A DNA stretch of 64,000 bases from NCBI GenBank assembly GCA_002269645.1, contig NIVC01003989.1:1-64000 (forward strand), written 5' to 3'. The stretch comes from Macrostomum lignano. Taxonomy: Eukaryota. The position numbers and the translations under genes are program-made. Below are positions 235 through 40,694 of the stretch, piece after piece (positions within the stretch are counted from its first letter, which is position 1; the number at the start of each line of letters is the position of its first letter). The notes beneath the pieces are model-generated. The model had not been told where the DNA came from. It worked only from the letters and a program-made list of their open reading frames with translations, and searched no databases.

Positions 235-375
235 CTAGCAATCTTCGCCCCCGTTGGGGGACATCTGTATAGAATCTCTGTTCTCTACAAGTATCAAAAG
301 ATAGCGAAATATAGCCTTCACAAAGAAAACAGACAAAATACTCAAAGAAGTGCAATGCAAAAAGAAATCATCGCA

Positions 376-480
376 AGACAGCAAGCATCCCCCACATAGC
401 AAGCATCCCCCAGATTGCAAGCATCCCCCGAATAGCAAGCATCCCCCAGATAGCAAGCATCCCCAGATAGCAAGAATAAG
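376..480. repeat. About 19-20 bp minisatellite (CCCCAGATAGCAAGCATC) in the Helitron 3' subterminal region
   Basis: Tandem units visible. The same unit recurs at 14745-14975 and 39290-40040, always a few hundred bp inside a CTAG end. Confidence 0.85.
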
Positions 481-1875
481 CCGAATAAGCAAGGGACAAA
501 TTGAAACGGTTTTCCTAAATTTTCCTATTGTTACATATTAAATATCGTTTGTACTCACAAAAGTATTGCTATTATCTCTGCGATTCTTGGTTGCTATTAT
601 CTCTTTGTGATTTTTATTAGAATTATATAGCATAAAAATTACACATTTCATGCACATTTGTACAAAGCAATGTAACATCCGTAAGAATGCAGTATTAGTA
701 TTTAAACAAAGATAAATAGACTTGCCACACAGAAAGTAAGGTTTATCTGTGAAGAAATAAAAATGATAAGTTAAGGCATTTTTAAACAGTAACCTAGAGA
801 TTAGTCATTTTTTACATACACATTGGTTGATGACAACTCGCACTGAAATTAATTTGAGCCGAAAATTGTTGTTTTTATAATAATGCCCTACTATGACCAT
901 ACATACAGAATAAACTGCATGACGCGTACTAAAACGAACAATATTACGCCTGTTTTATCTGTTTTAAGGACCACTGCAGTGGTCCTTAAAACAGATTTTA
1001 TGAAAAGTTACAATGGCAAGAACAAATAGATGTTGCTTCTTGAATCTTGATTTAATACATATACATAAAAATCTTCAAAGTGTCTTTCACTTTACATATC
1101 AAATCTCCATTTTAAGTCAATTTAATAATTGATAAGCCTAGTAGCTAAATTCAGTGGTGACTGCAAATCGTACGAAAACTGATATCAGTAATGAAGGACT
1201 TAAAAGGGCCTCGATTATTTCTCACTGTTGACTGTTATCTTTTATTGGTTTTATAATTTCAAAAATGTGCAGCAGCAAAAGAATATTAATTGGTGTATTT
1301 TTATGGGAATATTATCCATTCAACAGCTCAATTTGACTTTATTGAATACATACTCATATCAACTATGCTGCTTTACTAATACATTGTTAAACAGTACCAC
1401 CAAAATGTTGAATTCGTCCATTTTCTCTGTCCTTATTTGATTGATTAGTCTACTTATAGATTATATTTTCCATAAAAAATACATACACCAAAATTTAAAG
1501 TCTTTATGCGATAATTAAGCTATCGCAGTCCATTCCTGCCAATACCAATAAAAGTGACTTCCAAAGTTATTACTTATTAGTAGTGTCCGAATCAGAATAA
1601 ACTATTAACACAAAAAATGCATGAGAAACAAAAAGTAAATTTCGGCAGTTTTGGCCAATAAATAAATAGAATTCTTGTGAACGAAGGCCGAAATGAAGAG
1701 TGAATTTCGTTAAATTACATTCACCAACAAGACAACTCCGAAATTTAGCACAATATTTCTTTGCACACATGCCTTGTATGATGTTCTTGCAAAAGGCTTA
1801 CCAACAAGATAGCCCATTGCACAATTTATATACATTTAATTATTTTTGTGATTTATTATATTTAATTATCTGTTT

Positions 1876-2005
1876 TGACATGTTTATGTTTGACGCGGTG
1901 GCTGTTTTATGTACGACATGGTGGCTCTTTAGTGTTTGACATGGCGGCTCTTTTATGTTTTGCATGGTGCCTCTTTAATGTATGACATTGTGGCTCCTTT
2001 TGTTT
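1876..2005. repeat. About 5 degenerate copies of the 23-bp unit that forms the large satellite at 15050-21640
   Basis: Units resembling ATGTTTGACATGGTGGCTCTT. Confidence 0.75.
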
Positions 2006-2294
2006 GACGAACCAAAAAAACCAAAAGACTCGTTATTAAAACGGATTTATCATAAGACAAAGAGCCTCTTTGCAGCAAAAATGATTAGCTACTTTACTTA
2101 AATTTGCCTGGTGCTTCTAACTAAGCATTTTAGTCGTAGTTTAACTTACTTAATCACTTAATCAAATTTTTATTTATTTTTTAATCAATTTTTTACTTAA
2201 TCAAATACTTAACCTAGTTAACAGCACAAATAGTTATAAATAGTCAAAATACAAATAGTCAAATAGTTAACAGCACAGAAATTAAAAAAATGAT

Positions 2295-2894
2295 TCATTC
2301 TTCAACGACAGTGCTGCGGCTGCGGCTGCGGCTGCGGCTGCGGCGGCGAGGTAGGTCTCTGCATTCTGCCGCGATGTGGCCGCGCCGCAGGCAGAATCTG
2401 CAGAGTCCAACTGTGAAAAGAAAGCGATTAGATTTGTCAATATTAGTTTTGACGTATATTCACTTCACACGAAATGAGTGGTCAAACGAAAACTGATTTA
2501 GTCAAAACTACCCCTCTAAACAAACTCGTAATACAATTAACTTACGTGCGCGCATTTCGTCTCTCACAAATCGAGTTCTCGCCGAGCGCGAGAACAGCTG
2601 CAGTTGATGCTGCTGCTGTTGCTGTTGCTGTTGCGATTGTTGTTGTTGCTGTTGTTGTTGTTGCAGTTGTTGTTGCTGCTGTTGTTGTTGCTGCTCCTCT
2701 TGCTGTTGCTGCTGTTGCTGCATCGGCCAGGGTGCCGGTGGGAGAATGGGGGGTGGGTATGGGTTGGGATAGGGCATCCCAGTAGATGGGGGGGGATAAA
2801 ATACACCAGGAAATGGATAGGGATAGGGATAGGGATAGGGATACGGATAGGGATTGGGATAACTTAGGTAGGGATTACTTAGGTACGGATTCAT
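2295..2894 (-). CDS. ZK1: two-exon Pro/Tyr-rich + polyQ + CCHC zinc knuckle + RS-repeat protein (about 154 aa)
   Basis: Exon 1 2894-2546 ends GCAC|GTAAGT; exon 2 2410-2295 follows TTTCTTTTCACAG. The phase-1 splice joins in frame to give ...DEMRAL-GLCRFCLRRGHIAAECRDLPRRRSRSRSRSRSTVVEE*, a canonical CX2CX4HX4C. Confidence 0.8.
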
Positions 2895-3811
2895 AGTACT
2901 GGAAAAAAGACTGGCGTGGGCTTTTAAACTTATTTTTTATTTTGTTCGGGCGTATAGTGAAATTGTTAAGAACAGAGTTGGTTATATATACTATAGTGTA
3001 CAGTGGCCAAAACCAGATAATGGCTGGCTGATCCACCACCCCAAATTTGCTGTTTTTTCACCCCCAAATCTCTAGTTATCTCTAGCACTGATTGGCTCAC
3101 CCTGTCGGCTTTTGATTCCTGAGTTATTTCTAACCAATCACCTAACTCCCCAGCCCAGCCTAATAAGCCTATATTTTGTTTTCAGTGGACAATGAGGGTG
3201 AGACATCATACTTTAATCACCTCATTATTGATTTTATCTGGAGTCTCTCTACCTCTGTCGTGAAAATTTAGCTACAAAATGCACTTTTAAGTTTAAGTGT
3301 AAGTTTCAGTTTTGTTTTGTAAAAAATAACAAAAGTATTTGTTATTATATCTGTTAGTATTTGTTCTTGTAGTCCAAAAAATCAATAACTTTCCGCGGCA
3401 CGCGTAAACAGCCCAAATAAAGTAATTGCATGAAAAAAGTCTCAGCGATCCAGTTCGACCCAGCGGAGGGGTTGGCGCTGACTGCAGCCCCCAATCGACC
3501 CCAGCCTAAACCAGCGGACCAATCAGAGGCCACCAAAATTATAAAGGTGGCTAAAATTTACAAACAGGGGTGACTAAAAAATGAATAGAGTGGACGGTAA
3601 GAAAAAGGCTATAACAGAAAGTCGAGATGCTGACCAATCAGACGGCAGCGAGAAAATATTGAGAGTTGTTTTGGTACGAAGGGGTGGCTGCAGGGCTGCA
3701 ATATATAATAAAAACAAACTGCAAATGCAGTAAACTTTTCGCCTCAACTGTTTCAAGTCAAGCATCACTTTTATCTACTTTTAACTTAGATTCTTTAAGT
3801 AACGAAGAGAA
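2895..3811. promoter_or_regulatory. Putative bidirectional promoter between ZK1 and RPA-like-1
   Basis: Head-to-head genes, with several CCAAT/ATTGG boxes (about 3090, 3134, 3519, 3633). Confidence 0.5.
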
Positions 3812-5455
3812 ATGGAATCAAACCCTACGCCAGCCCAGAAGGTCAAATTCAGCATCTCTGCTCTTCTGCCCGGCTTGATGGATTCACCGGTCGTTGGTCT
3901 GATAACGAGACTGACAAAAATCCACGCCTACGAGAACAACAAAGCTGGATCAGGCCAAGTGTTCTCCTTCACTTTGACTGACGAGACTGCAGACATCAGA
4001 GTGAGCGTTTTTGGCAAGGACCTGAAGTCATTGCTGGAAATGTGCCAAACGGTCGAGACAGTGCGCATTTCTGGAGGCTGGATCAAAAAGGCTGACCCAA
4101 GGTACAACACTACGGAAAACGAGTATGAGATGAGCGTCTCAGTTGACAAAAGCGGCACCATCATGACTTCAAACGAGACGGTCAACAGGCGTTCCCGGGA
4201 CTACAGGAGGATATCGGAAATTTCTGCATGCCAAATGAAAACGTAAATATCTTGCACTTTATGCCTTTATTTTTTTTTATACATTTTCCTCGTGCTTTGC
4301 TTTACTTTAGGGTTAGGGTTAGGGTTAAGCTAGGGTTACGGTTAGAGTTAGGCTGAGGTTAGGGTTAAAAGCTTGACCGATTTTTTAAGATTTCAAGGCT
4401 TAATGGGGAGGGGGCATCGATGAGATGTCAAGGGGGGGAATTGATATGCTAAGGCTTGTGGGGGAATTGCTAACATGCCAAGGCTTACAAGGGACTGCTG
4501 AGGTATTGCAAAGAGACGCTACATGTAGTTTATTAAAAAACTTGTAATGCATTTTTTGGCTGCCCAACGGGGGGCGCTGATTGCTAGTCATTCAGCTAAA
4601 TTTGCCCTACTCAAAAACTTTCACCGTACGACAGGAAAGTTGACGTTCGTGGCATCATTTCTGCAGTTGAGAAGCCAAAGGAAGTAAAAACTGGTGCCGG
4701 AAAGCTCGTCGATTTAGCAAAAGTTACCATCGTTGATCGGTCCGGGTCCTCTGTGTCCTGCACTTTTTGGGCCAGTTCTTCTGCGCAGGTGAATAATTGG
4801 TCTATCGGCGACATTCTCGCGATTCATGGCTCTCAAGTCCAAGAGTACGCCCAGATGATAAGCCTCGGCTGTTCGCAAGCAGAAGTGCATCACTGGCCAG
4901 AAAATTCGCAAGAGTTCTCCGACCTAACCGAGTGGTACAACGGCGCCACAGCTAGCCAGCAGCATTTCGAGGCTGTGCGAGCGACACAGATTCCACCACC
5001 TGAGCAGCAAGCATCACATGATGAAGAAATGACATTACACTACCCGAACGAATGTTTCACCAGTTTAACAACATGCGAAGAATAAGACTGCGTTTCGGAA
5101 GCAAAGAGGTTAGTTTATTTCGAAAATGTTTGTTCACTTTAGTTTAATCAAAGGCAGTTATTATTGTATACTTCTTATGAGTGTTCACTTCAATTTAATC
5201 AAAGACAGTTATAATTATATACTTTTCAAACCGAATCCCACTTCACAGGTAACATTTTCACGAGATTCGAACAGCTGGAATCAGCAGATGCCCACAGGCT
5301 CTACACCTAGGCCTCTGTACACGAGTGACATGTCTCAGCAGAACAGCTGGAATCAGCAGGTACCCACAGGCTCTACACCTAGAACTCCGTACACTGGTGA
5401 CTCGAGCACTCGAAATCAAGAATTTTTGACATCACCAGCAGAAGATGAAGACTAA
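3812..5455 (+). CDS. RPA70-like ssDNA-binding protein 1 (two OB folds), 3 exons, one 1-nt frameshift
   Basis: Exons 3812-4242, 4635-5108, 5249-5455. GQVFSFTLTDETADIRVSVF...KKADPRYNTTENEYEM resembles RPA70 DBD-A; VDVRGII...VTIVDRSGSSVSCTFW...LAIHG resembles DBD-B. Exon 2 is 474 nt versus 475 in the paralogue (frameshift near 5045). Confidence 0.8.
4307..4587 (+). mobile_element. Degenerate (TTAGGG)n tract followed by a Helitron 3'-end fragment, inside intron 1 of RPA-like-1
   Basis: TTAGGG units 4307-4367, then GAGATGTCAAGG-type repeats like those at 53080-53800, then a CCCAACGGG hairpin and CTAG|T at 4584-4587. Confidence 0.65.
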
Positions 5456-5464
5456 TTTTTTCTT

Positions 5465-5657
5465 TTTGAATTTCTTCAAACTGAATTCGAACAGATATCA
5501 ATCAGAAAATTTTTTCCTCAACCTCTATTTCTGTGCTGTTGTCTTTTAACTTTCGCAAATTTTGAATTTCTTCAAACTGAATTCGAACAGATATCAATCA
5601 GAACATTTTTTCCTCAACCTCTATTTCTGTGCTGTTGTCTTTTAACTTTCGCAAATT
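5465..5657. repeat. About 96-bp tandem duplication downstream of the RPA-like-1 stop codon
   Basis: TTTGAATTTCTTCAAACTGAATTCG...TTTCGCAAATT occurs twice. Confidence 0.8.
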
Positions 5658-6619
5658 TATGCCTCAAAATGCAACTAAAGATATATTTAAGATCTAAAAA
5701 TCCATTTTAAATTTGTAACTGTAGAAGGGCTTGAATAATATCACCTTTTTTACTTACAGTAGTAATAAGTAATAATCACGCAAAATTCGCTAGCAGTTTG
5801 ACAAGTTTGAATATTTTTATTTGCATCAATTTGCGACGGAGCCTACGTCTTAAATTCGATAAATAAAAATGATTTCCGGGAAAACTTTTACCCAAGGCGT
5901 AGGCTCTGAATATTTGTCTTTGTCTTTATTTTTCAACTGTTGTTAAACAGTCGGACAAAGGTTTATAGTAGAAGAAGATAATTTTTAAGATACAGGCTTT
6001 AACAGTATAATATTTAGATAATAAAATAATAAGTAATACTAAAAAGAGCAAGTTTTAAATTTCGAATGCAATACGATGCATTGAAACTTCTTATTAATTC
6101 AAAAAGATAAATGAACGAGTAAGAACCGCTGAGCGTAGGGGAAAAGAATAAAACGAAAGTTAGTGTTGTTTAGTAATAAACGAGTACAGTAATTTATTGA
6201 TTTACCAATTTAATAGTTAAACAATATTCAAGCAGCCACTATAATATTGTAATATTATGCAAATCATGTAACAGTAAAGCTCACTTTCTCAAGGAAATTT
6301 TCCGTTCGTCTCTCCTTCTCGCTCAGATTTTTAGTTTGGCTCTCTTTCGTTTGCACTTTTGCTTTTTCTTGGTTCTCCCTATTGTTATCGTTTCTCAGCC
6401 AGTTCAAGAACTCTTTCTCAGCTTTGCAATCATCATTTACTCTGCTTTCGCTGTGAATCCAGGGCGTCGCCAACAGAGGGGTCATCTTTCCCTAGTAAAA
6501 GCTATACGGCCTCACCACCCAACCATGTGACCCAATATTGAAATCAATAGTATTCCTTCGGCGAAAAATATAGTGCCTGCAATTCTGCCGCATTAATAAT
6601 GAAAACTAAGTACGTGTGG

Positions 6620-7260
6620 GACCAAAATGAGTTTCTGCGGCGCTACAAGTAGTGCCTGCGCTTAAACGAGTGCCTGCGGCGCTAAAATGAGTGCCAGCGC
6701 CTAAATGAGTGCCTGCGGCGCTAAAATGAGTGCCTGCGGCGCCTAAATGAGTGCCTGCGGCGCTAAAATGAGTGCCTGCGGCGCCTAAATGAGTGCCTGC
6801 GGCGCTAAAATGAGTGCCTGCGGCGCTAAAATGAGTGCCAGCGCCAAAATGAGTGCCTGCGGCGCTAAAATGAGTGCCTGCGGCGCTAAAATGAGTGCCT
6901 GCGGCGCTAAAATGAGTGCCTGCGGCGCTAAAATGAGTGCCAGCGCCAAAATGAGTGCCTGCGGCGCCTAAATGAGTGCCTGCGGGGCTAAAATGAGTGC
7001 CTGCGGTGCAAAAATGAGTGTCTGAGGCGCCAAAATAAGTGTCTGCGGTGCCAACATGAGTTTCTGTGGTGCCAAAATGAGTGTCTGAGGCGCCAAAATA
7101 AGTGTCTGCGGTGCCAACATGAGTTTCTGTGGTGCCAAAATGAGTGTCCGCCTGCGGTGCCAAAATAAGTGTCTGCCTGCGGCGCCAAAACGAGTGTCTG
7201 CGGTGCCAAAATGAGTTTCTGTGGTACCAAAATGAGTGTCTGCCGGCGACGCCAAAATAA
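6620..7260. repeat. 21-bp GC-rich minisatellite (GAGTGCCTGCGGCGCTAAAAT)
   Basis: Tandem units, degenerating toward the right. Confidence 0.9.
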
Positions 7261-8264
7261 GCGCCTTAAATGAATCCTTTGACCTTTCTGAAGTTTGCAA
7301 TTTTCATTTTCTGCAATTTTGCATTACTCCTTGACTCAGCTTTTGCAAAAATATTTTCTCAGCAATACTCCCATCTAACTCTAATTTTAAGTTAGATCTC
7401 TCGATCTCATATTTTTATTGGTCTCTTTCTTTCGCGCTAAAATTTTCTGTTCGGCTCTATTTCCTTAGCCTTTGCGCTTTGCCTCAGTCTATTCGTATTT
7501 ATTGTTTCGCCAAAGATTAAGAAATGAAGTAAGACAAAAGCTTCATTCAGGGCCTTCGCCTTAGTTAAAATTGACATCTTGCGAGTTTCGTATATTATTC
7601 AACTTTCAATATATGGAAGACGAAGGCCCCGTCGCAAGTTGATGCAAATCGTTTTTTATGAGCTTACAGTCCACAGTTGTTACAGGTGACTTGAGATATT
7701 TTGGATTTTTGAAAAAAGACTGTCAATCGTAGTTTGCGTAAAAATTCACTCTAAATGTTAAGTTTTTGCACACCTTGGAAAACTAAAAACAAAATTGTTT
7801 CGTCTTTTGCATAAATTTGCGATATAAAATAGGTAAAGTTAGTATTCGAATTATAATGAAATTTCAGGTGAAAAATAAAAGACAAATTAACTGCTCATCA
7901 AAGACTTAATTCATTCAAAGCAGTGCAAAAGAAGGTTTGTTTCAAAAGTTACTTTCGGCTAATATGAAATTGCCTTAAAATACAAATTAACTGTAAAATG
8001 ACTGTAAAAATTAATACAATGAATAAAATAAGCCTAATTGAGCTTCAACATTAAGTTCATCAGCTATTAGCTCGTACTCACTGCCATTGCAATATCTACG
8101 CTTCGTTAGAAATGAGGTTGGGGCAATAAGTTTCCTGCGATTCTTTTAGGAATGAGAGCTACCACTTTAGAGATATGGGGAAATAATTATTCTATTTTTC
8201 CTTAAAAATAAATGAATATACTTTCTAGCCTTTTGCATAAGGAAAATTATTGCTCACCCCATTT

Positions 8265-11200
8265 TCAGTCTCGCAAGCACCGGTCGACGGCCTCCAAATC
8301 CTTCCGGTTTGTCATAGAAATCTCGTCCCAGACAATTAGATGCACTGTCCGAAATACAGCGGCCTGTTTGGACTGCGCTCCAACAGCGCACACGTCTTTG
8401 CTCGAACGGATCGCCCGAATTGGTATCTTGAACCTGGCATAGACAAATAGTTTCAGCATGCCGAACATATTTACAGCACACGAAATATTTACAACTGCTT
8501 TTTGAAATATTAACAATAAATTACTCACGTTGAATGCGCCGTCTGTCCACCTGGCAAAAGAGTCGCTGCGATTCCAGAAGCCGCAACGGCGAGGGCGACT
8601 TCACCCCGGCTGCGCACGAAGGCTAGCAGAACCTCTAGCAGGAAGGTCTTGCCAGTGCCAGCAGGTGCGTCCAGGAAGTGCAAGCCGCTGGTGCCGTCCA
8701 CAAGATTCTGAGTCACGGACTCGTACACCGCTTTCTGCTCATCTGTCAGCATTGGTAAGCGCGCCTCAGTAATCAGTGCCTGCTCAACCGTATCAAACTG
8801 CATTGGTCCATCTTGAGGTGTCACGGAGGCCGCAGGCAGGCCGTACTCTGGCAGGCTTCTCCCGCCCATGGAGATCAGCATGCTCTGAAGCTCACGCAGC
8901 GCCAGGTCAGTAATCTCCTCGGTGCTCAAGTCTCGGTGGTGAAACCGCAGGTCCTCGCTGAGATCCTCGGCAAAACTGCACCAGAGGTCGCTGCCATCCT
9001 CAGGCTCACCCCATATGAGAATTACGGCCAGAAGATGTCTCAGGGCTCTTGGCATTCTTGACTGAACGGCCTCAGCTAGACACCGCCGCCAGTGATCATC
9101 TCGCTGCAGCAGGCCAAGGGCCATGCAAGCAGCCTTGGCGCTCGGATGCACAACGCCGTCCACGGTCTGCAGCGCCTCGAAGCTAGTCGGTCCCCTAACA
9201 TTCAAAAGGAGCATTCGAACATAAAATAAATCACCTGCTCTTGGACTCACCGTGTACATGCGTGCAACGTTTTTGTTCCGCACTACACCCGGATGGCCAT
9301 CGACTCGCACACCCTGCTTGGCCCGCCGCCACTCTCTTTCGCTGGAGTGCCACACGAAGTAGGACGGCACCTCCGTGTAGAGCAAGGACCCAGCAAATTC
9401 GTCAATACGGCACAGCTTGAAAAATGCCGTCAAAGTCGAATCCTTCGGCGTTCTCGCTTTTGCTCTTGCGGTCCCCTCGTTGAAATACACGAGCTGCTCT
9501 TCCGACTTGTGAACGCAGAGTCGGATGACCGCCGGAAACCTGTTGTGCACCTGATCAGAAAGTGAAAGGAAAATATACAGCCTTTAAGTTTCGATGGAAA
9601 TTCAATTTATACTATGACGAGGTTTCACAGCTCTGGTTAAAATGAGCCAATAATAATTAGAATGCGAATTACTTCAAAGCCCAAGATGGTATTCACGGCT
9701 TCCATTGGACCAATGTAGCGCGCGGACAGGTACTCCTTAATCTCATCACGCCGCGGCTCATTTCGTGTCGTTTGCGTCGGCTGCTGGTTACCCACTGCCT
9801 GCTCTCTCGGTTCAGTAGAATTCCTATTGGCATCGACTTTGAACGTCGCCATGTCGCCACCCTTTAACAGGTACTTGATCACGTACTTGACCGACTTCAC
9901 AGTGGCGCAAACTTCGACGTTCAAGTGGCACGCAAACTGGAGCAACAGGTCAGGGCTGTACGGAACGACCCACCTGTTTTAATGAAAAAATAATATCATT
10001 AACTTTCAGAAACAAAAGCTGCAATGCACAACTAAGCAATATATTAGCGTTTGAACTTCCCTGTTGTCCATGCGAATGCTCCGGCCTTTGAACAGTTTGT
10101 CCACTGTAAATCCGCCCATCTCAGGCGATAGTCTGCGGTACAGTGGGTAGCCAGTATCGCTGGTCAGCGTCACCTGCTGGAACTCTTTCGGAAAGCCCTT
10201 GCTGCATTCGCCATTCTCCATGCAAGGACACGCCGGATTCTCCTTGCCGCAGGGGCCATGGATCATGTGCGTCTTCACCAGCTCATACAGCACAGGCTGC
10301 TGCTCTGGGTCCGGAATCTCGGCAGACACGATGTCATCGTATCGGTCCGGAGTCACTCGCTGACCGCTCACGAGCCACAGCAGAAAGTGCACATGAGGAA
10401 GACCTGGAGCGTCAAAAAAAGTATTAAAAAATATCACAAAACCTTTGTAAATCTAAATTTCAATAAATCTTAAAACTTTGATTCTTGCAAGTCAGAATTT
10501 TTACTCACCACGCTTCTGGTACTCCAGTGAGCAAACGTGAGCGGCCTCTTTCCCATAGCGCTTGGTCAACTGGGCCAGCAGAGCTTTCTTCTTCATTTCA
10601 AAGACTCGGCTAACAATGTCGGGCCGGTCTTCTGCCCGCTGTCCAGGCAGAAGCTGAGCGCTGATCTCCGGCCATTTCGGATTGCACGTTGCGGTGACAA
10701 ACAGGTCCGGCTTACCGAACTTGTGAACATAGGTCATAGCGTCCTGTAGCCTCTCCATCAGGTACCTTGGCCCGCCAACGAAGCTCGAAGACAGAAGCAC
10801 ATGCGCGGGCTTGCCTATGTCACTCGGATCTCTGTCGGTAGACCTGCCATCAGCTGCAAACAGAGCGTCCCGCAGACCGCTGTACGTCTCGCTGCGCAGG
10901 TCCTGCTGATGGGTCCGCAAATACAGCAGCCTCTCTGCCTCAATCTTGGCACACATGTCCACCAAGTACTGCTGAAATAATCTTCGGCCATAGTGCAGCA
11001 CACTGAACTGGCCCGCTCGCACCATGATTTCGCTCGCATAGTATTTCATGGGCGTCAATTTCTTGCCATTACTCATCAGCAACTCCGGGTGCCAGCCATC
11101 TTCGCCATTCGGGAACAGCAGCACATACTCCAGCGGGTCGTATGAGCGGTGCGTCTCGCTGATTCTCTGGGAACCGCCTCCACGCAGTTGAATCACCACG

Positions 11201-24084: not shown

Positions 24085-24089
24085 GCCTT

Positions 24090-28612: not shown

Positions 28613-28656
<44 letters not shown>

Positions 28657-28660
28657 GCAA

Positions 28661-28695
<35 letters not shown>

Positions 28696-29100: not shown

Positions 29101-29541
29101 GCTCCGCCAACAAGACAGTATCATTGCACAGTTCATTGCATTTGACTGCAAGAATAATGGTGTCAATCCTACTGCTTGTTGGCTTGCTTTACTCTGCACT
29201 GCTGGTCAGAGGCATTCACTGGGGCAAGTTAAGTTCACGCACTCAACGTCACACAAAAAGCTTAGCTATCACAAGTCTCTAGGTTTGCTGAAGCTGCTTC
29301 AAACCTCTCTCTCATGGCTGCATACCCTCAGTTTTAGAGTGGAAGAACCTCTGAATCGTGAAAAAGCAGCGAACACGTTATTTCAACCACAATCTCAAGG
29401 CCCATTGATATGCAGCCAACCTGCTATATATTCACCTAATATTTACCTACATTAATTTCACTATTACTTATTAACTTTCATGGCACAACTAAATTGGGAT
29501 CCGATTGTATCCGATCCTATTCTGGTTTGCCTTGATCCCAA
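29101..29541. repeat. About 430-bp direct repeat, copy 2
   Basis: Matches 23657-24084. Confidence 0.9.
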
Positions 29542-29649
29542 TTTAGTATGCAAGGATCCCAACTTAGTTATGCCAAATGATCCCAATTACGCTAAGCAAT
29601 GATCTTAGTTCTGTTATGCAATGAACCCAATTAGGCTAAGCAATGATCT

Positions 29650-30870: not shown

Positions 30871-31129
30871 TTATGCTCAGTTCTGTTATGCAATGAACCC
30901 AATTTAGCTAATCATTTTGCCTAGGTAATCCCTGATCTCAATTCCATTATGATCCCATCTAATTTGAATTTATTAGGTGAATAAAGCAGGATTTGCCTGA
31001 TATGTCTCAGCGGGCCATTTACATATCAGGATAAACTACTTGTGATCACTATTAAACACAGATACCAATGCGACACTCACAGACAAAATGACACAAGTAA
31101 TACTCACTTCAATGACGCCTGGAAATCGC

Positions 31130-34100
31130 CTAATCTCCAGTGAGCACTTCTGGATACACCACGTTTCTGGTCTTGGTGCCACAGATCCGGACGCGAACAT
31201 TCGCGGCGTTCTTCGCCCGTGACAGCGCCGTGTACAGCTGACCATGAGTGAAGCAACCGACAGCCAGGTCAACTCCAACGGTCTCCAGGGATTGTCCTTG
31301 TGCTTTGTGTATTGTAAGGCAGAAGCTCGGCTTCACCGGAAACTGCAGCCGCTTGAAACTCACTGGTAGATCCGCATTGTTTGGAATCAGCGGAATTCGC
31401 GGCAGCAGGATCTCGTCTCCAGTGAACTGACCGGCGGCAATCTTGCAGCGCAGCACATTATCGCCCATCGTGAGAACGATGAGCCGTGTACCGTTGCACA
31501 GCCGCGGCGGGTTGATATTCCGAAGAAGCACCAGCGGCATGCCCACCTTGATCCTGAGCAGATAAGTTGGAAAATTCGGGGCATCCAGCTGGTTTAGCAA
31601 CTCTGTCGGGAAATGCGTAGCGGCCTCCTCATCAGCCAGGCTGTCTACAGAGCGATACTCTCGCAGGCAACCCGGGAAAATGCCCAGACACGTCTCGTTG
31701 ATGGCATCAACAGAGTCGTTGTACGGCGCCAGTATCGCTCGACTTGCAAAATAGTCGTCCCGCTCCGCTGATTCTTCAAACGACGGGTACACGAACTTGA
31801 TCAGGTCATTCAGCGGAGCCTCTGCAGAAATCACCATCTCAGCGGGAAGGGACACCTTCTCCTCAGCATCCTGCTCGATTGTCCCGGTTCCGATCTGTGA
31901 AAAGAAAAGCAATAAAAACATGAAACATAATATTCGCAATGATTCGCGAGAAAAAATGATTTTTACACCCCATTCTCACCTGCATGAGTAGCTCCGTGAA
32001 CTTCTGGTACATCGCTGGCTCGGAGCTGCACAGCAGACGAATGTTTCTCGTCAAGCGATGTCGCTTGAAAAGTTTCCACAGCGAAGATCTGCAGACACAC
32101 GCCATGACGCTGTTGGCGCGGGTTCCATTCACTACGACAGGCAGGAGCTGGCGGAAGTCACCGGAACACACCAGAGTGACTCCTCCAAATGGCTTGTCCT
32201 GCTTCCGAACGTCTCGCAGACACCTGTCCACGGATTCCAGATCCTTTCGATTGGTCATGGAGATCTCGTCCCAGACAATCAGCCGAACTCTACGAAACAC
32301 TTCCGCTTGCTTGGACTGCGCGCCAACAGCGCAGACATCCTTGTTGGATCGGAGCAGCCGGACTGGGATCTTGAACCTAGAGTGAAGTTGTCATAGGTAG
32401 AATCGATTAGAAACGCGACTCTAAAATTCAGAAGCATTCCCCTAATCTAAAAAACTTACGTGGAATGCGCAGTCTGTCCGCCTGGCAGCAGAGTCGCTGC
32501 GATTCCAGACGCCGCAACTGCCAGGGCGAGTTCACCGCGGCTGCGCACAAAGGCCAGCAAAACCTCCAGCAGGAAGGTCTTGCCAGTGCCAGCGGGCGCG
32601 TCCAGGAAGTGCAAACCGCCCGAGCCGGCCACAAGATCCGCAGTCACCGACTCGTACACCGCAATCTGCTCCTCCGTCAGCATTGACAGTCTCGCTTCCC
32701 GGATCTCGGCCTGTTCAACCGGGTCGAACTGCATCGGTCCGACTTGAGGCGGCACGGAGGCCGCAGGCAAGCCGTACTCGGGCAGGCTGTGACCGCCCAT
32801 GGAGGTCAGCATGCTCTGCAGCTCGCGCAGCGCCAGGTCGGTGATTTCCTCAGCGCTCAGATCTCGGTGGTGAAACCGCAGGTCCTCGCACAGATCCTCG
32901 GCGAATGTGCACCACAGATCGCTGCCATCCTCAGGGTTGCCCCAAATCAGAATGACAGCCAGCAGGTGCCTGAGAGCTCTCGGCATTCGCGACTGGACTG
33001 CCTCGGCTAGGCAGCGCCGCCAGTGGTCGTCTCGTTGCAGCAGACCCAGGGCCGTGCAAGCAGCCTTGGCGCTGGGACACAGCACTCCGTCCACAGTGTG
33101 CAGCGCCTCGAAGCTGGTTGGCCCTCTAACCTGCAGGAGGAGCATTCGCATATAAAACAGATCCCCTGCTCTCGGACTCACCGTGTACATTCGGGCAATG
33201 TTCGTGTTGTGCACAACACCAGGGTGGCCCTCAACTCTCGAACCCTTCTTGGCGCGGCGCCACTCCCTCTCGCTGTGGTGCCACACGAAGTAGGACGGCA
33301 CCTCGGTGTACACCAGGCCTCTAGCGAATTCATCAGTGCGGCACAGCTTGAAGAAAGCCGTCAGCGTCGAATCTCTGGGCGCCCTGGCCTTTGTGCTCGC
33401 ATTTTGCTCGTTGAAATACACGAGCTGCTCGTTAGACTTGTGCACGCACAATCGGATCACAGCCGGAAATCTGTTGTGCACCTGTTGTGTTTTAGTTTAA
33501 AAACCATATCATTATTTTCCCATTCTTTGCTCCTAGCACTGCCTTGCAAACATCTATGACTTACTTCAAAGCCCAAGATGGTATTCACGGCTTCCATTGG
33601 GCCTATGTAGCGCGCCAGCAGATACTCCTTGATCTCATTTCGCCCCTCCTTCTTGGCTTGAGTCGGAGCCTTGCTAGCTGAACCTTCCTGTCGTTCGCCA
33701 TCCGCAGCCTGCTCTCCTGGCCCGCTCGGCTTCTTGTTTGCCTCGAACTTGAACGACGCCATGTCGCCGCCTTTTAGCAAGTACTTGATCACGTACTTGA
33801 CCGACTTGACGGTGGCACAAACTTCAAAGTTCATGTGGCATTCGAAAAGGAGCAGCAGGCCCGGGTTGTATGGTACAACCGACCTGTATTTGTGCCAGGA
33901 AAAGAATTGCTAATTAATGATTTATGTATTCTAGCAATGGTAAATTAAACTTACAGTAAATAAACAATTTAGCAATATAAATAAACTAAACACAAGGCTA
34001 AACTAAGTACTTTGCTTTCGTATTAAAGAATCAACCTTTCAATCAAGTCTGAAAAAACACCAACACCTCCTCACTCACCTGTTGTCCATGCGAATGCTGC

Positions 34101-37100
34101 GGCCTTTGAATAGTTTGTCCACCGTAAATCCGCCCATCTCAGGGGACAGCCTGCGATACAATGGGTAGCCAGTATCGCTGGTTAGGGTCGCCTGCTGGAA
34201 CTCCTTCGGGAAGCCCTTGCTGCACTGGCCGTCCACCATGCACGGGCAGGCTGGATTTACCACGCCGCAGGGGCCATGGATCATGTGAGTCTTCACCAGC
34301 TCGTGCAGCCTCGGCTGCTGCTGTGGGTCCGGGATCTCAGCGGACACGATTTTGTCGTAGCGGTCCGGAGTCACTCTCTGTCCACTGACCAGCCAGAGCA
34401 GAAAGTGCACATGGGGGAGACCTGTGGAAGACATAAACAAGTGATTCAAAGCGACGTATGAGTGATCACAATTTAGTCATGTAAATTAATTAAAATTCTA
34501 AACCAGCGTTTGCATCGTAGAGAAAGCGAAGTTTGAATCATGGAGAAACTGGAGTTTGAATCATGGCTAAACCAGAGCTTAATTCCGGTTTGCAATGACC
34601 CCTTGCATAAAAATATGGATTGCTAAACCTGGAATGCAATTACAGAATGAAAATTGAAAGCGCAATTTGCTAACTTACCGCGCTTCTGATATTCCAGAGA
34701 GCAAACATGCGCGGCCTCCTTTCCAAAGCGCTTCCTCAGCTCGGCAAGCAGAGCCTTCTTCTTCAGCTCGAAAACACGCGTGACAATATCCGGCCGGTCC
34801 TCAGGTCGCTGTCCAGGCAGCAGCTGTGCACTGATTTCCGGCCACTTAGGGTTGCACGTCGCCGTGACAAACAGGTCCGGCTTGCCAAACTTTTGTACAT
34901 AGGTCATGGCGTCTTGCAGCCTCTCCATCAGGTACCTTGGCCCGCCAACGAAGCTGGAGGACAGGAACACGTGCGCAGGCTTGCCAATATCAGTCGGATT
35001 TGTGTCGGTCGACCTGCCATCAGCAGCGAATAGAGCGTCTCGCAGACCGCTGTACGTCTCACTGCGCAGATCGCTCTGATGGGTCCGCAGATAGAGCAGC
35101 CTCTCTGACTCAATCTTGGCGCACATGTCCACCAGGTACTGCTGGAACAGCCGCCGTCCGTGGTGCAGCAGGCTGCTATGGCCCGCTCGCACCATGATTT
35201 CGCTGGCATAGTACTTCATCGGCGTCAGCTTGCGGCCATTGCTCATGCGCAGCTCCGGGTGCCAGCCGTCCTCGCCATGGGGGAACAGCAACACGTACTC
35301 CAGTGCATCATACGATCGGTGCGTTTTGCTAATCCTCTTGTAGCCGCCACCCCGCAGTTGAATGACAACATCTCGGCTAGTTGCTGGCTCATCACCGTCT
35401 TCAGGGGCCTCAGTGTCCTCAGTGTCCTTAACAATGAGGATGCCGACCTCGTTTGCCGTGGGCAAATTGTAGCGCCTGATTTTGAACGGTAGTAACAAAT
35501 GCTTTTAACAAAACTCTTTACAACGGTAAACATTCCTGTGTACACAGGCACAAAGCTTTAAAAGACAGGTTTTAAAATGTGTTCGAATCCCTTTTCAGTT
35601 ATTGTTAGCTCACCGAATGTGTTCCCAGAAGGTCTTCGGTCCGGGTGAATCACGATTCGCGCATCCACAAGCTCCGGATCCTCCATGATCCGCTGTGCTG
35701 CAGCCTTCAGGCTCCGAACGTAAAGGTTGCACTCGTGAAGCAACGTCTGTAGCAGCTCATGTAGCTCTGGCTTCACCCTATCGCTCAGACTCTGCTGGCT
35801 TTCGAGTTCGCGGTCAGTGAAGTACACCTGCCAGCCGCGAGGAACAGCAGACGCTTCAGCAAACAGCGGCATAGCAGTGTGGTGCAGCTGACCGCTGATG
35901 ATGTAGCTGGGATTCCAGCCTGGCACCAACCGCGGCTTGGCACTCAGCGAGGTCAGGTGCAGCACAGAGTTGTAGCTCCGGATGTTGGTCAGGAACTCTG
36001 AGCTCATGCCATGCCGGCCCATGTACAGGTCAGCCAGCAGCTGTGGCACAGTCCGGGTGGGCAGCTTCACCTTGCCGCCAGCACAGCAGAAATTGCCTGT
36101 CTCCATGCGGAACAGCTTGGCACCGCAATGGTTGCATGCCCAGTCCATTGGCCCGCAGTCATGGGCTGGAGCTTCTGGCCTCGCCATCGTCTCAGGCCTG
36201 ATAATAAAAATGGAATGTATCTCTTAGTAACTGTTAAATGTAAATGTAACTGTTCATTGTGTGTCAGTTTACCTTGCAGTAGCGGGTCCGTCTTCAGCGC
36301 GGCCCGCAGTCTCATGTTCCGCCGGCATCGCGCTGGGGCCCTTGGCCTTTTTGGCCCTCTTGGCAGGAGTTCTGCTTGCTGCCAGGCTTGGGAACTCAGC
36401 ATCTGTAAAGGCTTGCAAAAGCTCTCGAAGTCTCAGTGACTCGTAATGTTCATGGCGCAAAAGCACACGCACAATGGCATTAGGAGGGCGCAAATTAGCC
36501 CTGAAATATTGCATCACACTACCATTGGCCTGGTAAATGACCAGATCCACATCAAAGCAGCGGCTCAACAAAGAGGCAACTTCATCTGAAACATAAATTC
36601 CTGCTTGAAAAGAGGAATTCACGATCTCATCAGCACTCTCAGGTGCAATGAGGCCATCTGCAATCAGCTGTGGCATGAGTTCTGCAACACGGCAAGACAA
36701 GTCCTGCCGCAGGGAGGCTGCGTCAGTTTCCAGCGGGGTTCCACGCAGCTGATCACACACAGCATAAAAAAAGCAATTGCCATCACCAACAATGGGGATT
36801 ACCTGCAACTGCTCAAAGGGTACTATAGTTTCTGTACCTTGCTGCTGGGTGTCCGACCTAAGGGGCAATGGGTGAACGTAAGCACAGCAGCCTTAATTGG
36901 CTTTTTAAGACAATTCATTCCTCAAAAATCGTTATCCGCTTAATTTATACAGAATAAAATAGATACTACAAATTATCCCCTTCAAGGCAATTCAGAAAAA
37001 AACAAAAATAAAGACTTGTTATAAAAAGTTACTATACAACTCACCTAGAAACCACAGCTCCACGGCAACGAATCCGATCGGCTTCCAGTCGGGCAGCCCA

Positions 37101-37454
37101 CTCTGCCTCAGTCTCAGCCTCTCTGCGCTGAGCGTCCCGCTGCCGCTGTTCTTCCAGTCGGGCAGCCCACTCTGCCTCAGTCTCAGCATCTCTGCGCTGA
37201 GCATTCCGCTGCCGCTGTTCTTCCAGTCGGGCAGCTCGCTCTGCCTCAGTCTCAGCATGTCTGCGCTGAGCATCCCGCTGCCGCTGTTCTTCCAGTCGGG
37301 CATCCCGCTCTGCCTCAGTCTCAGCATGTCTGCGCTGAGCATCCCGCTGCCGCTGTTCTTCCAGTCGGGCATCCCGCTCTGCCTCGGATTCTGCCTGTCG
37401 CCGTCGCTTGGCATCGCGGCTCTTCTTTAAACTGCTGGCGCCGCGTCGAACCAT
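31130..37454 (-). CDS. Helitron H2 Rep/helicase polyprotein (STPR-like repeats, OTU, ZnF, HUH Rep, Pif1 helicase), about 1740 aa, 9 exons
   Basis: Exons 37454-37045, 36857-36273, 36197-35614, 35475-34679, 34421-34079, 33883-33565, 33481-32460, 32376-31980, 31894-31130. All phases are consistent if one G is restored near 35622. All three Rep motifs and the Pif1 motifs through TIHKAQGQSL and HGQLYTALSRA are present. Confidence 0.9.
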
Positions 37455-37934
37455 GATTGAGAAATGAGAAGTGAAATGAAATTAGTTCAGAAAGAATGAT
37501 ATGGTTTGAAAGATGAAAGTTTGTGAATTTGGATGTCTGAAGAATCAGATAAGGTGCCCTTGAGCCAAACTATTACAGGCTATTTATCATCCAGTGGGCT
37601 GAATTGGAGCTTATCTTAAGACGCAGGGTAGAAACTGAAAAATCGATAAAGAAGAAAGGGGTCTAAATCTAAAAAACCTATGATTTGGGGTGTGGGCTCT
37701 CCAGGCCCGTGTGTCCAAATTCCGGGGCAGAGGGCTCACAATGTACACTGGTCTGCGCCAGCCAGTGAAAAAAACTGTGAATGTAATCTATTTATGACTG
37801 TCTCGCCAGTGGGGTTGATACAGCTATGTACTTTTGACATAGTGAAATTCTTATCAGAGTTACCAGTATCACTGATATCAGTGATATCATCAATATCAGT
37901 GATAATCAGTATCACTTTTAACAAAACTGGTTTT

Positions 37935-38440
37935 GCAATGATTCAAACTCTGGTTTAGCCATGATTCAAACTCTGGTTTAGCCATGAGTCAGACTCTCGT
38001 TTAGCCATGATTCAAACTCTGGTTTTGCCATGATTCAAACTTTGGTTTAGCCATGATTCAAACTCTGGTTTAGTCATGATTCAAACGATGGTTTAGCCAT
38101 GACTTAAACTCTGGTTTAGCCATGATTCAAACAATGGTTTAGCCATGATTCAAACACTGGTTTTAGCCATGATTCAGACTCTGGTTTAGCCATGATTCAG
38201 ACTCTGGTTTAGCCATGATTCAGACTCTGGTTTAGCCATGATTCAGACTCTGGTTTAGCCATGATTCAGACTCTGGTTTAGCCATGATTCAGACTCTGGT
38301 TTAGCCATGATTCAAACACTGGTTTTAGCCATGATTCAGACTCTGGTTTAGCCATGATTTAAACTCTGGTTTAGCCATGATTCAGACTCTGGTTTAGCCA
38401 TGATTTAAACTCTGGTTTAGTCTGATTCAAGCTCTATTTT
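37935..38440. repeat. 23-bp minisatellite (GATTCAGACTCTGGTTTAGCCAT) upstream of RepHel-2
   Basis: About 21 tandem units; two inverted units also occur in intron 4 at about 34545-34580. Confidence 0.9.
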
Positions 38441-38538
38441 TGCAATGATTCAAAGTCAGATAATATTTTATTTACGAAGTGAATGAAAAAAATAAATTTA
38501 AATAATCTTCAATCACTACTGGCTGAAATTTGACGCAG

Positions 38539-38600
38539 TGCAGAATCGAACCCTAGCCGAGCCTATAACCAATTCCTAGTGCCTACACATCGGCTATTCC
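38539..38600 (-). other. tRNA-derived / Pol III-promoter-like cassette in the H2 5' region
   Basis: Minus strand GGAATAGCCGATGTGTAGGCACTAGG...GGGTTCGATTC; homologous to 43682-43750 and 51658-51735. Confidence 0.5.
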
Positions 38601-39120
38601 ATCATCTACAGTAGCAGTCCAGTCTGTTCGCATCTTTCTTGGCTATCTCTTTTCAATTGGAGAACATGAATTGTGGCCCTTATAATTCAATTCTTACAGC
38701 AAGTCAATTGGAGTAAAAAATTATGACATAATCAATTTCTCAGTCAGCCAGAATCAGTCTCAATTTAAGTTGGCAATATGGTTACGCAATTTCATTCAAG
38801 TTTTGTGTGCATTTGTTCGGCACTGTTTTCAACTTGTTGTGATGCAATCTTTATCACAATCGGAATTCAGTCAGTCAGTTTTTTCTCTAGCATTCTTACA
38901 ATGCATTTCAGGTCGAAAGAGCTGCTTGACCTTTGCAAAAAATCATGTTTTTCGAATATTTAATCCCTTTAACATTGAGCAATTTCTTAGCCAATATGCA
39001 TGTACCGTCCCGGGAAAATTTCTGATCGAATGGTGCAAGTTTGAAGAAAATCGGTTGAGCCGTTCGGGAGAAAATCAATTACAAGCAAGCAACCAAGCAT
39101 TTCATTTTTAGTATATTAGA

Positions 39121-40694
39121 CTAGCAATCTTTGCCCCCGATGGGGGGCATCTGGATAGAATCCTTGTTTTTTACAAATAACAAATAGACAGCGAAATAAA
39201 GCCTTCAGAAAAAACAACAGACATTCCCTCTTAAAAACAAAACATCCCAAGACAGCAAGCATCCTCAGACAACATTCAAGCATTGATCCCCAAATAGCAA
39301 GCATCCCCCAGACTGCAAGCATCCCCCAGATAGCAAGCATCCCCAGATAGCAAGCATCCCCCAGACTGCAAGCATCCCCCGATAGCAAGCATTCCCCCAG
39401 ACCCCAGATAGCAAGCATCCCCCAGATAGCAAGCATCCCGCAGATAGCAAGCATCCCCCAGATAGCAAGCATTCCTCAGATAGCAAGCATCCCCCAGATC
39501 GCAAGCATCCCCAGATAGCAAGCATTCCCCCAGACCCCAGATAGCAAGCGTCCCCCAGATAGCAAGCATCCCCAGATAGCAAGCATCCCCCAGACTGCAA
39601 GCATCCCCCGATAGCAAGCATTCCCCCAGACCCCAGATAGCAAGCATCCCCCAGATAGCAAGCATCCCGCAGATAGCAAGCATCCCCCAGATAGCAAGCA
39701 TTCCTCAGATAGCAAGCATCCCCAGATCGCAAGCATCCCCAGATAGCAAGCATTCCCCCAGACCCCAGATAGCAAGCGTCCCCCAGATAGCAAGCATCCC
39801 GCAGATAGCAAGCATCCCCCAGATAGCAAGCATCCCGCAGATAGCAAGCATCCCCTAGATAGCAAGCATCCCCCCCCCAGATAGCAAGCATCCCCCAGAC
39901 AGCAAGCAACCCCTGATAGCAAGCATAACCTGGATACAAAGATACCTTATAGATATCTAGCAACCCCCTCTCAGATAGCAAGTACTCTCCACCCCCAAGA
40001 GCAAGCATCCCCCTGATAGCAAGTATCCATCCTTAAATAGCAAGCATCCACCAGAGAACAAGTAGCTAGTGCAACAATTTCCTTAGCTTTATAATGGTTT
40101 CATTTTGTTTGGCATGACACTTCTTTTATGTTTGAAATGGTGTCTCTTTTTTAACTCAATTTTAACTGTCTTCTTTCCAGATAATTACAAATCTTTTCGT
40201 AAAAACGCGATTAAAATTGGCCAATTGGTTCTATCTCTAGAACGTTATGCAAATAATAACACAAATTCTCTTCGAGTGAAAGTCACACGAAGCAGCTATG
40301 ACATAATCAAATACTCAGGCAGTCAGCATCAGTCTCAATTAAAGTTAGCAATATGGTTACGCAATTTCTGTCTTTCAACTTGGCACAGTGTTTTCAACTT
40401 GTTGTGATGCAATCTTTATCAAAATCAGAATTCAGTCAGTCGGTTTTTTCTCTAGCATTCTTACAGCGCATTTCAAGTCGAAAGAGCTGCTTGACCTTTG
40501 CAAAAAAGCATGTTTTTCGAATATTTAATCCCTTTAGCATTAAAGCAGATTAAAGAAATTTTAACCGTCTTCTTTCCAGACAATTTTAAATCTTTTGGCG
40601 AAAACGCGATCAAAATCGGTGAAGTATTGCTCGCTCTAGAGCGTTATGGACATTCATTCAAGCATACAAACCTTAGAGATTTAGTATATTTAGA
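39121..40694 (-). mobile_element. Non-autonomous Helitron N4
   Basis: 3' hairpin plus CTAG ending at 39121; CCCCAGATAGCAAGCATC minisatellite at 39290-40040; conserved 5' subterminal block; 5' TCTAAATATACTAAATCTC at 40694. Confidence 0.75.

Follow-up and report, generated by a model that had tools for sequence, protein, structure and literature searches.

How different Helitrons come to lie end to end with no base between them is the question raised by this locus. The formation of Helitron tandem arrays and the choice of targets beyond "AT in AT-rich DNA" are still debated, and exact head-to-tail joints are usually ascribed to a rolling-circle concatemer. The whole stretch of Macrostomum lignano DNA that was analyzed, a 64-kb window, contains a minus-strand train of related, non-identical canonical Helitrons in the order stubs, E4, E3, E2, E1, and E0. 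At least five different Helitrons stand nose to tail in this train with base-exact joints, and a smaller plus-strand Helitron cluster comprises E5, a 19-nt stub, E7, and E6 (Table 1).

Table 1. Helitrons and Helitron fragments in the M. lignano window (LTS, 5′ end; RTS, 3′ end)
Feature	Position	Strand	Description
E0	1–234	−	First 234 nt of the LTS; most downstream train member, the rest beyond the left window edge; 87–92% identical to the LTS of E1–E3
E1	235–14600	−	RepHel Helitron, degenerate and composite; type-A LTS at 14600, type-A RTS (hairpin and CTAG) at 235
E1 RepHel exons	12606→8268	−	Helicase truncated
Inverted fragment within E1	3812–5067	+	Homologues of two downstream (RPA-like) Helitron genes
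Mini-Helitron (~330 bp) interrupting the inverted fragment of E1	RTS end 4587		Ordinary flank, CTAG|TCATTC
E2	14601–22253	−	Non-autonomous; type-A LTS and RTS; body a 23-bp satellite arrayed over 6.5 kb (15077–21636)
E3	22254–39120	−	16.9-kb RepHel Helitron with full gene set (36832→26471); type-A LTS, different RTS (..CCCCGAAGGGGGGCAAAACTTTAGCTAG)
E4	39121–40694	−	~1.6-kb non-autonomous; type-A RTS; 18-bp subterminal repeat array (39288–39926); type-B LTS start (TCTAAATATACTAAATCTCTAAGG) at ~40694
Stub stack upstream of E4	40695–40976	−	~7 stubs of 11–80 nt each, all starting TC..ATATACTAAA; outermost after A (40977)
E8	43650–44350	−	Separate Helitron 5′ part: 42-nt stub, then (TCTTCTA)n, then own LTS; outermost 5′ T (44350) after host A
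E5	50079–50529	+	3′ part of a Helitron; 15/32-bp subterminal repeats, hairpin, CTAG
19-nt LTS stub	50530–50548	+	TCCAATATACTAAAAATCC; forms the downstream side of the 50529/50530 junction
E7, first 5 nt	50549–50553	+	TCCAA; cut off from the E7 remainder by E6
E6	50554–54266	+	3.7-kb non-autonomous Helitron (TCACAATATAC...hairpin-GGCTAG) at A|T within the E7 LTS
E7, remainder	54267–54420	+	Diverged LTS (TATACTAAAAAAAAC...GGTACA..TTGCTAAGAAATTGCT)

The presence of two divergent RepHel elements, claimed in an earlier note made from the sequence alone, was confirmed by matches of both E1 and E3 to the Pfam domains Helitron_like_N (E about 4e-46), PIF1, and Pif1_2B and by the HUH motif LPHVH in each. 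The RepHel exon order is collinear with that of an independent contig, and a 224-aa stretch of E3 is 100% identical to the M. lignano entry UniRef A0A1I8J8H4. A match to OTU fell under the Pfam cut-off. The termini are those of canonical, Helitron1-type elements, with seven hairpin-CTAG ends in the window and every 5′ end reading TC followed by ATATACTAAA.

Exact junctions were found at four minus-strand positions, 234/235, 14600/14601, 22253/22254, and 39120/39121, and at one plus-strand position, 50529/50530 (J1 to J5). At each of them a C4-6..G4-6 hairpin, 7–10 nt, and CTAG are followed with zero spacer by TC(C)(T/A)ATATACTAAAAAT, and all five 5′ ends directly behind the GC hairpin and CTAG take the form TC..ATATACTAAA. 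The spacer-free CTAG|TC joints reported at these five positions were thus reproduced to the base. For 50529/50530, the position was exact but the downstream partner turned out to be a 19-nt 5′-end stub instead of a whole element, with a nested arrangement beyond it. While five of the seven hairpin-CTAG ends adjoin a 5′ end exactly, one (54266/54267) adjoins a 5′ end minus its first 5 nt, and one (4587) has ordinary flank. All six junctions are oriented head to tail and none head to head (0.5^6 = 0.016).

Chance placement was evaluated against the 9788 A|T sites on both strands of the window, or against their AT-rich subset of 997, with at most ten 5′ ends as the target. The probability of at least five of seven insertions landing on 5′ ends was ~2e-14, and ~2e-9 with AT-rich sites only, which ruled out chance even under the narrower set of targets. 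The region is almost wholly composed of repeats and satellites, and the joints are known from an assembled contig, as would suit a misjoining of repeats by the assembler. Misjoins falling five times at the exact last and first bases, between copies 8–13% diverged, are nevertheless hard to envisage, and we consider such an artefact very improbable.

The train members proved to be more closely connected than the earlier note had assumed. LTS homology extends over 350–520 bp at 87–92% identity among all partners, and one 5′-end family is common to all members. E2 (14601–22253) and E4 (39121–~40694) each have ~350 bp of the 5′ end and ~240 bp of the 3′ end in common with E1 at 87–92% identity, and 5.5 copies of the 23-bp satellite of E2 lie in E1 at 1883–2008, where this satellite is seeded. 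The description of these two non-autonomous elements as unrelated was therefore wrong.

The coding sequences of E1 and E3 record a longer history. Across their RepHel exons, dS is 0.7–1.0 and dN/dS 0.06–0.19, with a dN/dS of 0.11 at dS ~1 over 647 codons and of 0.106 at dS 0.78 over a further 341 codons. These values show that E1 and E3 diverged as working lineages under purifying selection before becoming neighbours. Taken with the 91% identity of their LTS, they show that the ends were conserved while the lineages diverged and that the joints link elements that were already different.

This divergence bears directly on the usual explanation, in which the train would be an old rolling-circle concatemer of one Helitron whose units diverged in place as mutations and deletions accumulated and satellites expanded. 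Such a concatemer predicts exact head-to-tail joints, as in the Myotis arrays cited in PMC2267711, and E1, E2, and E4 have both ends in common at roughly equal distances. However, dead copies decaying in place could not have been under the selection recorded between E1 and E3, the ends are ~10% diverged against a synonymous divergence of ~80–100%, and the RTS of E3 could not be aligned with the 3′ ends of the other members, so we find an old concatemer scarcely credible. In Myotis lucifugus, the Helibat arrays have perfect head-to-tail joints, CTAG meeting TC without an intervening host A, and, as far as the citing papers relate, are read as rolling-circle products in which a single element is repeated in tandem (Pritham and Feschotte 2007, cited in PMC2267711, PMC5876387), whereas the M. 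lignano units are different, pre-diverged elements. A single-donor array of the Myotis type was accordingly rejected: the joints are exact, but the dN/dS values, the E3 RTS, and the differing internal contents do not fit neutrally diverging copies of one element. The contention that one donor could not explain the neighbours was thus borne out.

The junctions themselves fall into different types. J1, J2, and J4 (three of the five exact ones) consist of the identical RTS-type/LTS-type pair, and blocks of 480–750 bp across the joint are 82–86% identical among them, as would be expected if one or a few junctions had formed once, here or elsewhere, and had then been multiplied as units, whether by transposition reading through the 3′ end, by segmental duplication, or by unequal crossing-over within an array. 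Bypass of the 3′ end is established Helitron behaviour (PMC4778049), and E1 is itself composite. Yet no joint has like elements on its two sides (RepHel, satellite, RepHel, short), the RTS distances among the three junctions are all ~11% with no sign of nested duplication, and J3, J5, and the event involving E6 and E7 use other end types. Copying would also leave the origin of the first heterologous joint unexplained, and we consider it unlikely as the source of the train. Counts of private substitutions over the train members revealed no 5′-to-3′ age gradient, which, like the recurring pair of end types, speaks against serial insertion at resident 5′ ends.

A sixth event shows what an insertion into a 5′ end looks like. 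E6, the first 578 bp of which are duplicated in tandem (50552–51130 and 51129–51708), splits the 5′ end of E7 at an A|T site 5 nt from the E7 start, between TCCAA and TATACT.... When these flanks, TCCAA and TATACTAAAAAAAAC, are joined, an intact LTS is obtained whose alignment to the family starts at nt 1, and nothing is duplicated. E6 is a true canonical A|T insertion, free of a target-site duplication, into another Helitron's 5′ end, and it supports, independently of the exact junctions, the reception of Helitron insertions by Helitron 5′ ends. The far end of E7 was not found within the window. Since the flanks of the train members are other Helitrons, the A|T target is legible only at E6, at the outermost 5′ ends, where an A precedes both stacks (40977, 44351), and at 4587, where a T follows the RTS. 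Assignment to Helitron2 or Helentron, which insert at T|T and have asymmetric terminal inverted repeats, was rejected, given that A|T is the target at the only insertion that can be resolved, the termini are TC...CTAG, and the hairpin is confined to the 3′ end.

Short 5′-end stubs provide a further trace of activity at these sites. They are stacked at 40695–40976, 44251–44350, and 50530–50548, so that in three stacks a complete 5′ end is directly preceded by short copies of the element's opening tens of nucleotides, the FoHeli-type arrangement of multiple 5′ termini. One stub of the E4 stack ends in CTAG|TC, the 42-nt stub of E8 is identical at 38/38 positions to a stub of the E4 stack (40817–40854), and the first 16 nt of the 19-nt stub equal the rebuilt E7 5′ end. 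Fungal Helitrons, which also form tandem copies, likewise carry short (<200 bp) repeats of their first 31–85 nt ahead of the complete 5′ end and reach as many as five termini (Chellapan et al. 2016, Mob DNA 7:27, PMC5148889; FoHeli1, Fusarium TR4, 2026, PMC13342296). The stub stacks of M. lignano resemble these repeats in position, but the fungal elements are of the Helitron2 type with asymmetric terminal inverted repeats, whereas those described here have canonical TC...CTAG ends and form a train of heterologous full elements.

Helitron circles offer another route to the same joints. Circles with precise ends are documented (PMC4778049; PMC5876387; PMC13286980), and a double-stranded circle with a ready-made CTAG|TC joint could integrate by homologous recombination if its LTS (or RTS) crossed over once with the matching end of a resident relative. 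The LTS homology common to all train members would provide the substrate, the LTS of E2 and E3, which flank the E3 body, match each other by BLAST over a greater length and at a higher identity than any other pair (92% over 458 bp), and only head-to-tail orientation would result. Such recombination is nonetheless inefficient at ~90% identity and would have been required five to six times at one locus, and it explains neither E6 inside E7, where the target is split and homology is lacking, nor the 19-nt stub between the E5 RTS and E7, nor the stub stacks. We regard it as rather unlikely.

Neither this type of joint nor its explanation by 5′ insertion is new, both having been described for maize (Du et al. 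2008, PMC2267711) and for fungi (Chellapan et al. 2016, PMC5148889). In the maize r1 region, a heterologous pair of adjacent Helitrons has CTAG joined to TC with no host A, and the model put forward was insertion at the AT that arises where a host A meets the T of the resident 5′ end, with entry at a G|T of the 3′ end retained as a second option (Du, Caronna, He, Dooner 2008, BMC Genomics 9:51; PMC2267711). Maize and M. lignano thus have in common a CTAG|TC joint between internally different elements. They differ in that the maize case comprises two elements and presence/absence alleles shown by PCR, while the M. lignano case comprises at least five in a row in one sequenced window of an animal genome, together with a nested 5′-end insertion and stub stacks.

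The alternative retained for the maize pair, non-canonical insertion at the resident 3′ end between the G of CTAG and a host T, would let the train grow downstream and would produce an identical joint. It requires a G|T target every time, or C|T for E7 behind the 19-nt stub, whereas canonical A|T targets suffice for insertion at 5′ ends, the stub/E7/E6 cluster included. Helraiser showed a strong preference for AT with an AT-rich 3′ flank across 1751 insertions, and GT is missing from the leading alternatives reported, which were TT, AC, and AA (PMC4778049). The clustering of 5′-end stubs and of E6 at 5′ ends would also remain without explanation, and insertion at 3′ ends seems quite unlikely to us.

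Serial Helitron insertion at resident 5′ ends is the reading we favour for the train, at a probability of about 0.5. From this one 64-kb window, we infer the formation of the exact junctions by 5′-end insertion, the order of insertion, and the rationale of a nick site. Helitrons mobilized by one transposase family would have inserted serially and strand-specifically, each at the A|T in which an upstream A adjoins the T that opens the resident 5′ TC, and every insertion would restore an A|TC site further upstream that could be used again. The resident 5′ end is probably attractive as the sequence normally nicked by the Rep nuclease, and also as an A|T ahead of a very AT-rich tract (TCCTATATACTAAAAAT), a known Helitron target preference. 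The short stubs would be what remained when events at this nick failed or stopped too early. It is possible, and we propose it tentatively, at somewhat under even odds, that the transposases of this family home strand-specifically to the point at which resident 5′ ends are nicked, cleavage of the target being the same reaction as cleavage of the donor.

A precedent for such targeting exists in bacteria. In the IS200/IS605 family (for example IS608) and in IS91, the HUH nuclease recognizes the same short sequence at the left end and in the target, so that a resident left end can serve as a target too and tandem copies follow naturally. These bacterial elements differ from the M. lignano Helitrons in their proteins and ends. 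To our knowledge, no sequence-specific target rule of the IS608 kind has been established for eukaryotic Helitrons.

The finding is an extension of the published maize and fungal observations and not a new kind of system. What the M. lignano locus contributes is joints between separately diverged working lineages, beyond what a concatemer can produce, with a clean 5′-end insertion and 5′ stub stacks in the same window. If homing to resident 5′ ends is true, a eukaryotic rolling-circle transposon would for the first time have been shown to prefer targets of a specific sequence, as IS608-type elements do, and transposase biochemistry would gain a simple target rule open to testing. Resident Helitrons would then be a safe haven for further Helitrons, sparing host genes, and read-through at a joint would fuse neighbours, which would account for chimeras that combine different ends and contain captured sequence. 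Each 5′ end of a Helitron would serve as a landing pad that renews itself, and a single targeting rule would yield trains, stub stacks, and chimeric elements with shuffled ends as its by-products.

The sequence was read at each of the five sites where a Helitron 3′ end meets a 5′ end, namely 234/235, 14600/14601, 22253/22254 and 39120/39121 on the minus strand and 50529/50530 on the plus strand, and the junctions claimed in the earlier note were borne out to the single base. The five joints share a pattern consisting of a short GC hairpin (e.g. CCCCCATCGGGGGG), 7-10 nt, CTAG, TC, 1-3 nt and ATATACTAAAAAT (within motifs, a slash hereafter marks a joint or an insertion point). An assembly artefact is unlikely in view of base-exact joints between diverged copies, as judged from the assembled sequence rather than from reads. 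A pattern scan of the window found seven hairpin-CTAG ends, five of which were exact joints; the end at 54266 was followed by TATACTAAAAAAAAC, and that at 4587 had an unrelated flank. The 5′ motif occurred about 17 times, with many occurrences stacked. Of the 9788 A/T sites on the two strands, 997 had an AT-rich 3′ flank. With these numbers, at least five of seven insertions would fall on one of at most ten 5′ ends with a probability of ~2e-14, or 2e-9 when only the AT-rich sites count. Therefore, AT-richness alone is insufficient to account for the junction pattern. Orientation was head-to-tail in all six junctions (0.5^6 = 0.016), which indicates that the acting process was strand-specific. 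The 104-aa stop-free translation across junction 14600/14601 had no match in 1.84 billion representative proteins, and the conserved 25-nt box of the 5′ end had none in metagenome contigs.

Helitron parts and stub stacks in the window
Feature	Position	Strand	Content
E0	1-234	minus	within window: 5′ end only
E1	235-14600	minus	RepHel
E2	14601-22253	minus	5′ end, 6.5-kb array of 23-bp satellite, 3′ end
E3	22254-39120	minus	RepHel, whole gene set
E4	39121 to ~40694	minus	short, non-autonomous, 18-bp subterminal repeat
First 5 nt of E7	50549-50553	plus	TCCAA
E6	50554-54266	plus	complete Helitron (TCACAATATAC ... hairpin ... GGCTAG)
E7 remainder	from 54267	plus	TATACTAAAAAAAAC..., then the family's conserved 5′-end boxes
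Stub stack upstream of E4	40695-40976		stubs of 11-80 nt, each from TC..ATATACTAAA
Stub stack upstream of E8	44251-44350		stubs of 11-80 nt, each from TC..ATATACTAAA

The earlier note had taken the neighbours in the minus-strand train (E0-E4) to be different elements, including two unrelated non-autonomous ones. A 5′ end (LTS) of ~350 bp was common to all train members at 87-92% identity, and the 3′ end (RTS) was common to E1, E2 and E4 at ~89% identity; the E3 RTS could be aligned with the others only at the hairpin and CTAG. The 23-bp satellite of E2 was also present in E1 (5.5 copies, 1883-2008). Since they share ends and E1 holds these satellite copies, both non-autonomous elements derive from the family of the other train members. 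The neighbours are different only in part. Within E2, ~286 copies of the satellite (TGTTTGACATGGTGGCTCTTTAA) fill positions 15077-21636 with a higher-order structure of blocks 86-89% identical, and the repeat looks like one that was born and expanded inside a Helitron.

Both RepHel proteins contained the Helitron_like_N, PIF1 and Pif1_2B domains and the HUH motif LPHVH. When compared with a gene map of a third subfamily, taken from an independent short-read contig, E3 had the complete gene set and E1 the 5′ part only. The E1 helicase is truncated after about residue 396, and at 3812-5067 (+) the homologues of the two downstream Helitron genes (one RPA/OB-fold-like) have the opposite orientation to the remainder of E1, which is therefore a degenerate, rearranged composite. 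The proteins nearest to those of the window were from M. lignano, and one in UniRef was 100% identical to an E3 ORF over 224 residues; an exact look-up of ORF 2508-2894 returned no record. The E1 and E3 RepHel sequences were separated by a dS of 0.7-1.0 with a dN/dS of 0.06-0.19 (pooled, 0.11 for 647 codons and 0.106 for 341 more). For dead copies that decay next to each other, a dN/dS near 1 is expected. The low ratios therefore indicate that E1 and E3 diverged as working lineages and that their differences predate the joining. A single-donor concatemer decaying in place is excluded for this pair, for which the claim that one donor cannot explain the neighbours was upheld. Despite this coding divergence, the ends of E1 and E3 were only ~9% diverged and were thus conserved meanwhile. 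An age gradient along the train was sought from private LTS and RTS substitutions, which showed no trend and were confounded by subfamily differences.

The PIF1 exon is interrupted by ~75 nt at the same codon (341) in E1 (8459-8528) and E3 (32385-32458), compared with the uninterrupted ORF of the Logan contig L002, and this is probably an extra intron in their subfamily. E3 also has an internal segmental duplication of ~2 kb with 94% identity (23616-26073 and 29057-31063), which includes a 31-bp satellite in 12 and 39 copies. The mini-Helitron with its RTS at 4587 was aligned to the homologous spacer of E3 to find its 5′ boundary, for which the divergence was too high.

In the plus-strand cluster, joining TCCAA to TATACTAAAA rebuilt an LTS that aligned with the family from the first base. 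The site 54266/54267 was rejected as a truncated exact joint, a better fit being the insertion of E6 5 nt inside E7. Directly upstream of the E7 start, positions 50530-50548 form a 19-nt stub of this 5′ end, and it is this stub, not a whole element, that the CTAG of the 3′ part E5 adjoins. In the two stub stacks of the minus strand (E8 is a separate 5′ part), one stub terminates in CTAG/TC, one is identical between the stacks at 38/38 positions, and an A precedes the outermost unit of both. E6 carries a 578-bp tandem duplication (50552-51130 and 51129-51708, +) starting exactly at its 5′ TC, with an internal joint ...GGCTAGGCATAA/TCACAATATAC without hairpin or exact CTAG; this duplication may represent a 5′ stub of greater length.

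The first ~25-60 nt of the Helitron 5′ ends contained a different short microsatellite in each copy, right after the conserved ATATACTAAA, with the types (TGTG or TGTC)n, (TGTA)n, (TGCT)n, (CTGT)n and (TTAGGG)n (e.g. 14560-14580, 22205-22235, 39075-39095 and 50575-50597). In 44252-44309, it is the initial 7 nt themselves (TCTTCTA) that recur, about 8 times. Short telomere-type (TTAGGG)n tracts were found at 4307-4367 (+), in the variable microsatellite slot that directly follows the 5′ motif of a ~330-bp mini-Helitron, and at 49883-49912 (-), near a retroelement's upstream end. A tRNA-like T-arm (GGTTCGAGTCC) at ~43690-43720 (-) inside E8 was discarded, as ARAGORN found no tRNA.

Two further M. 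lignano loci (L001 and L009, GCA_002269645.1) had no RTS/LTS joint; they carry a more distant Helitron family with 52-61% protein identity and are uninformative on the family of the window. Both contain a ~480-bp repeat (L001 6090-6590, L009 8250-8700) in which an LTS-like TTATACTAAAACTGA or TTATACTAAAACTGACGC stands behind a CT-rich, variable tract and a CCCCCGGAATGGGGGG hairpin lies close to the other end; the boundaries of this repeat are not TC...CTAG. The Logan contigs L002-L008 cover a third subfamily (78-84% DNA identity) in its coding core alone, and no Helitron ends were found in them. Unrelated to the Helitrons, a 320-bp inverted repeat with 99.4% identity and a 119-bp gap (44721-45040 and 45160-45479) could represent an element of the foldback or hairpin type. 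Retroelement remnants at 46798-49176 (-) and 60870-61502 (-) showed RNase H, a weak reverse-transcriptase match and an integrase zinc-binding domain. For the ORF with RNase H (490 aa, 46798-48270), a search of 5.8 billion proteins gave no homologue at E <= 1e-20.

The most economical reading of the train is serial insertion, in which each newcomer would enter at an A/T whose A lies upstream and whose T is that of a resident 5′ TC, since such canonical targets cover every joint, the stub/E7/E6 cluster included. By analogy with bacterial HUH transposons, we infer that a resident 5′ end would be favoured as a target, being the sequence normally nicked by the Rep nuclease. A double-stranded Helitron circle, which already contains CTAG/TC, could enter through a single crossover within the shared LTS and yield the same train in the same orientation, but this route fails on E6 inside E7 and on the stubs. 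Composite units could also have been copied, multiplying the joints, but their origin would be left unexplained; when RTS and LTS distances were compared for such unit copying of junction blocks, the RTS distances were all equal. Insertion at the 3′ end of the resident would require a G/T or C/T target every time. The published target of the reconstructed bat Helitron is AT, with AT-richness strongest beside the inserted 3′ end and with TT, AC and AA as prominent alternative dinucleotides, GT being unmentioned (PMC4778049). Serial 5′-end insertion is consistent with this target preference.

Two different Helitrons joined CTAG/TC, as in the window, were described in maize by Du et al. (2008; PMC2267711), who proposed exactly this A/T model, with a G/T alternative alongside, and set the pair against the concatemer reading of the Myotis arrays. 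In fungal Helitrons, Chellapan et al. (2016; PMC5148889) ascribed repeated 5′ termini of 31-85 nt to self-insertion, and three tandem copies to 5′-end insertion occurring twice or to rolling-circle replication. A 2026 study described active Fusarium copies with up to five 5′ termini (PMC13342296). For Macrostomum, the literature search turned up no paper on how Helitrons are organised. In light of the maize and fungal precedents, the window shows a known phenomenon on a larger scale and in better resolution rather than a new type of system; to those precedents it adds the test for selection and a 5′ end cleanly split by an insertion.
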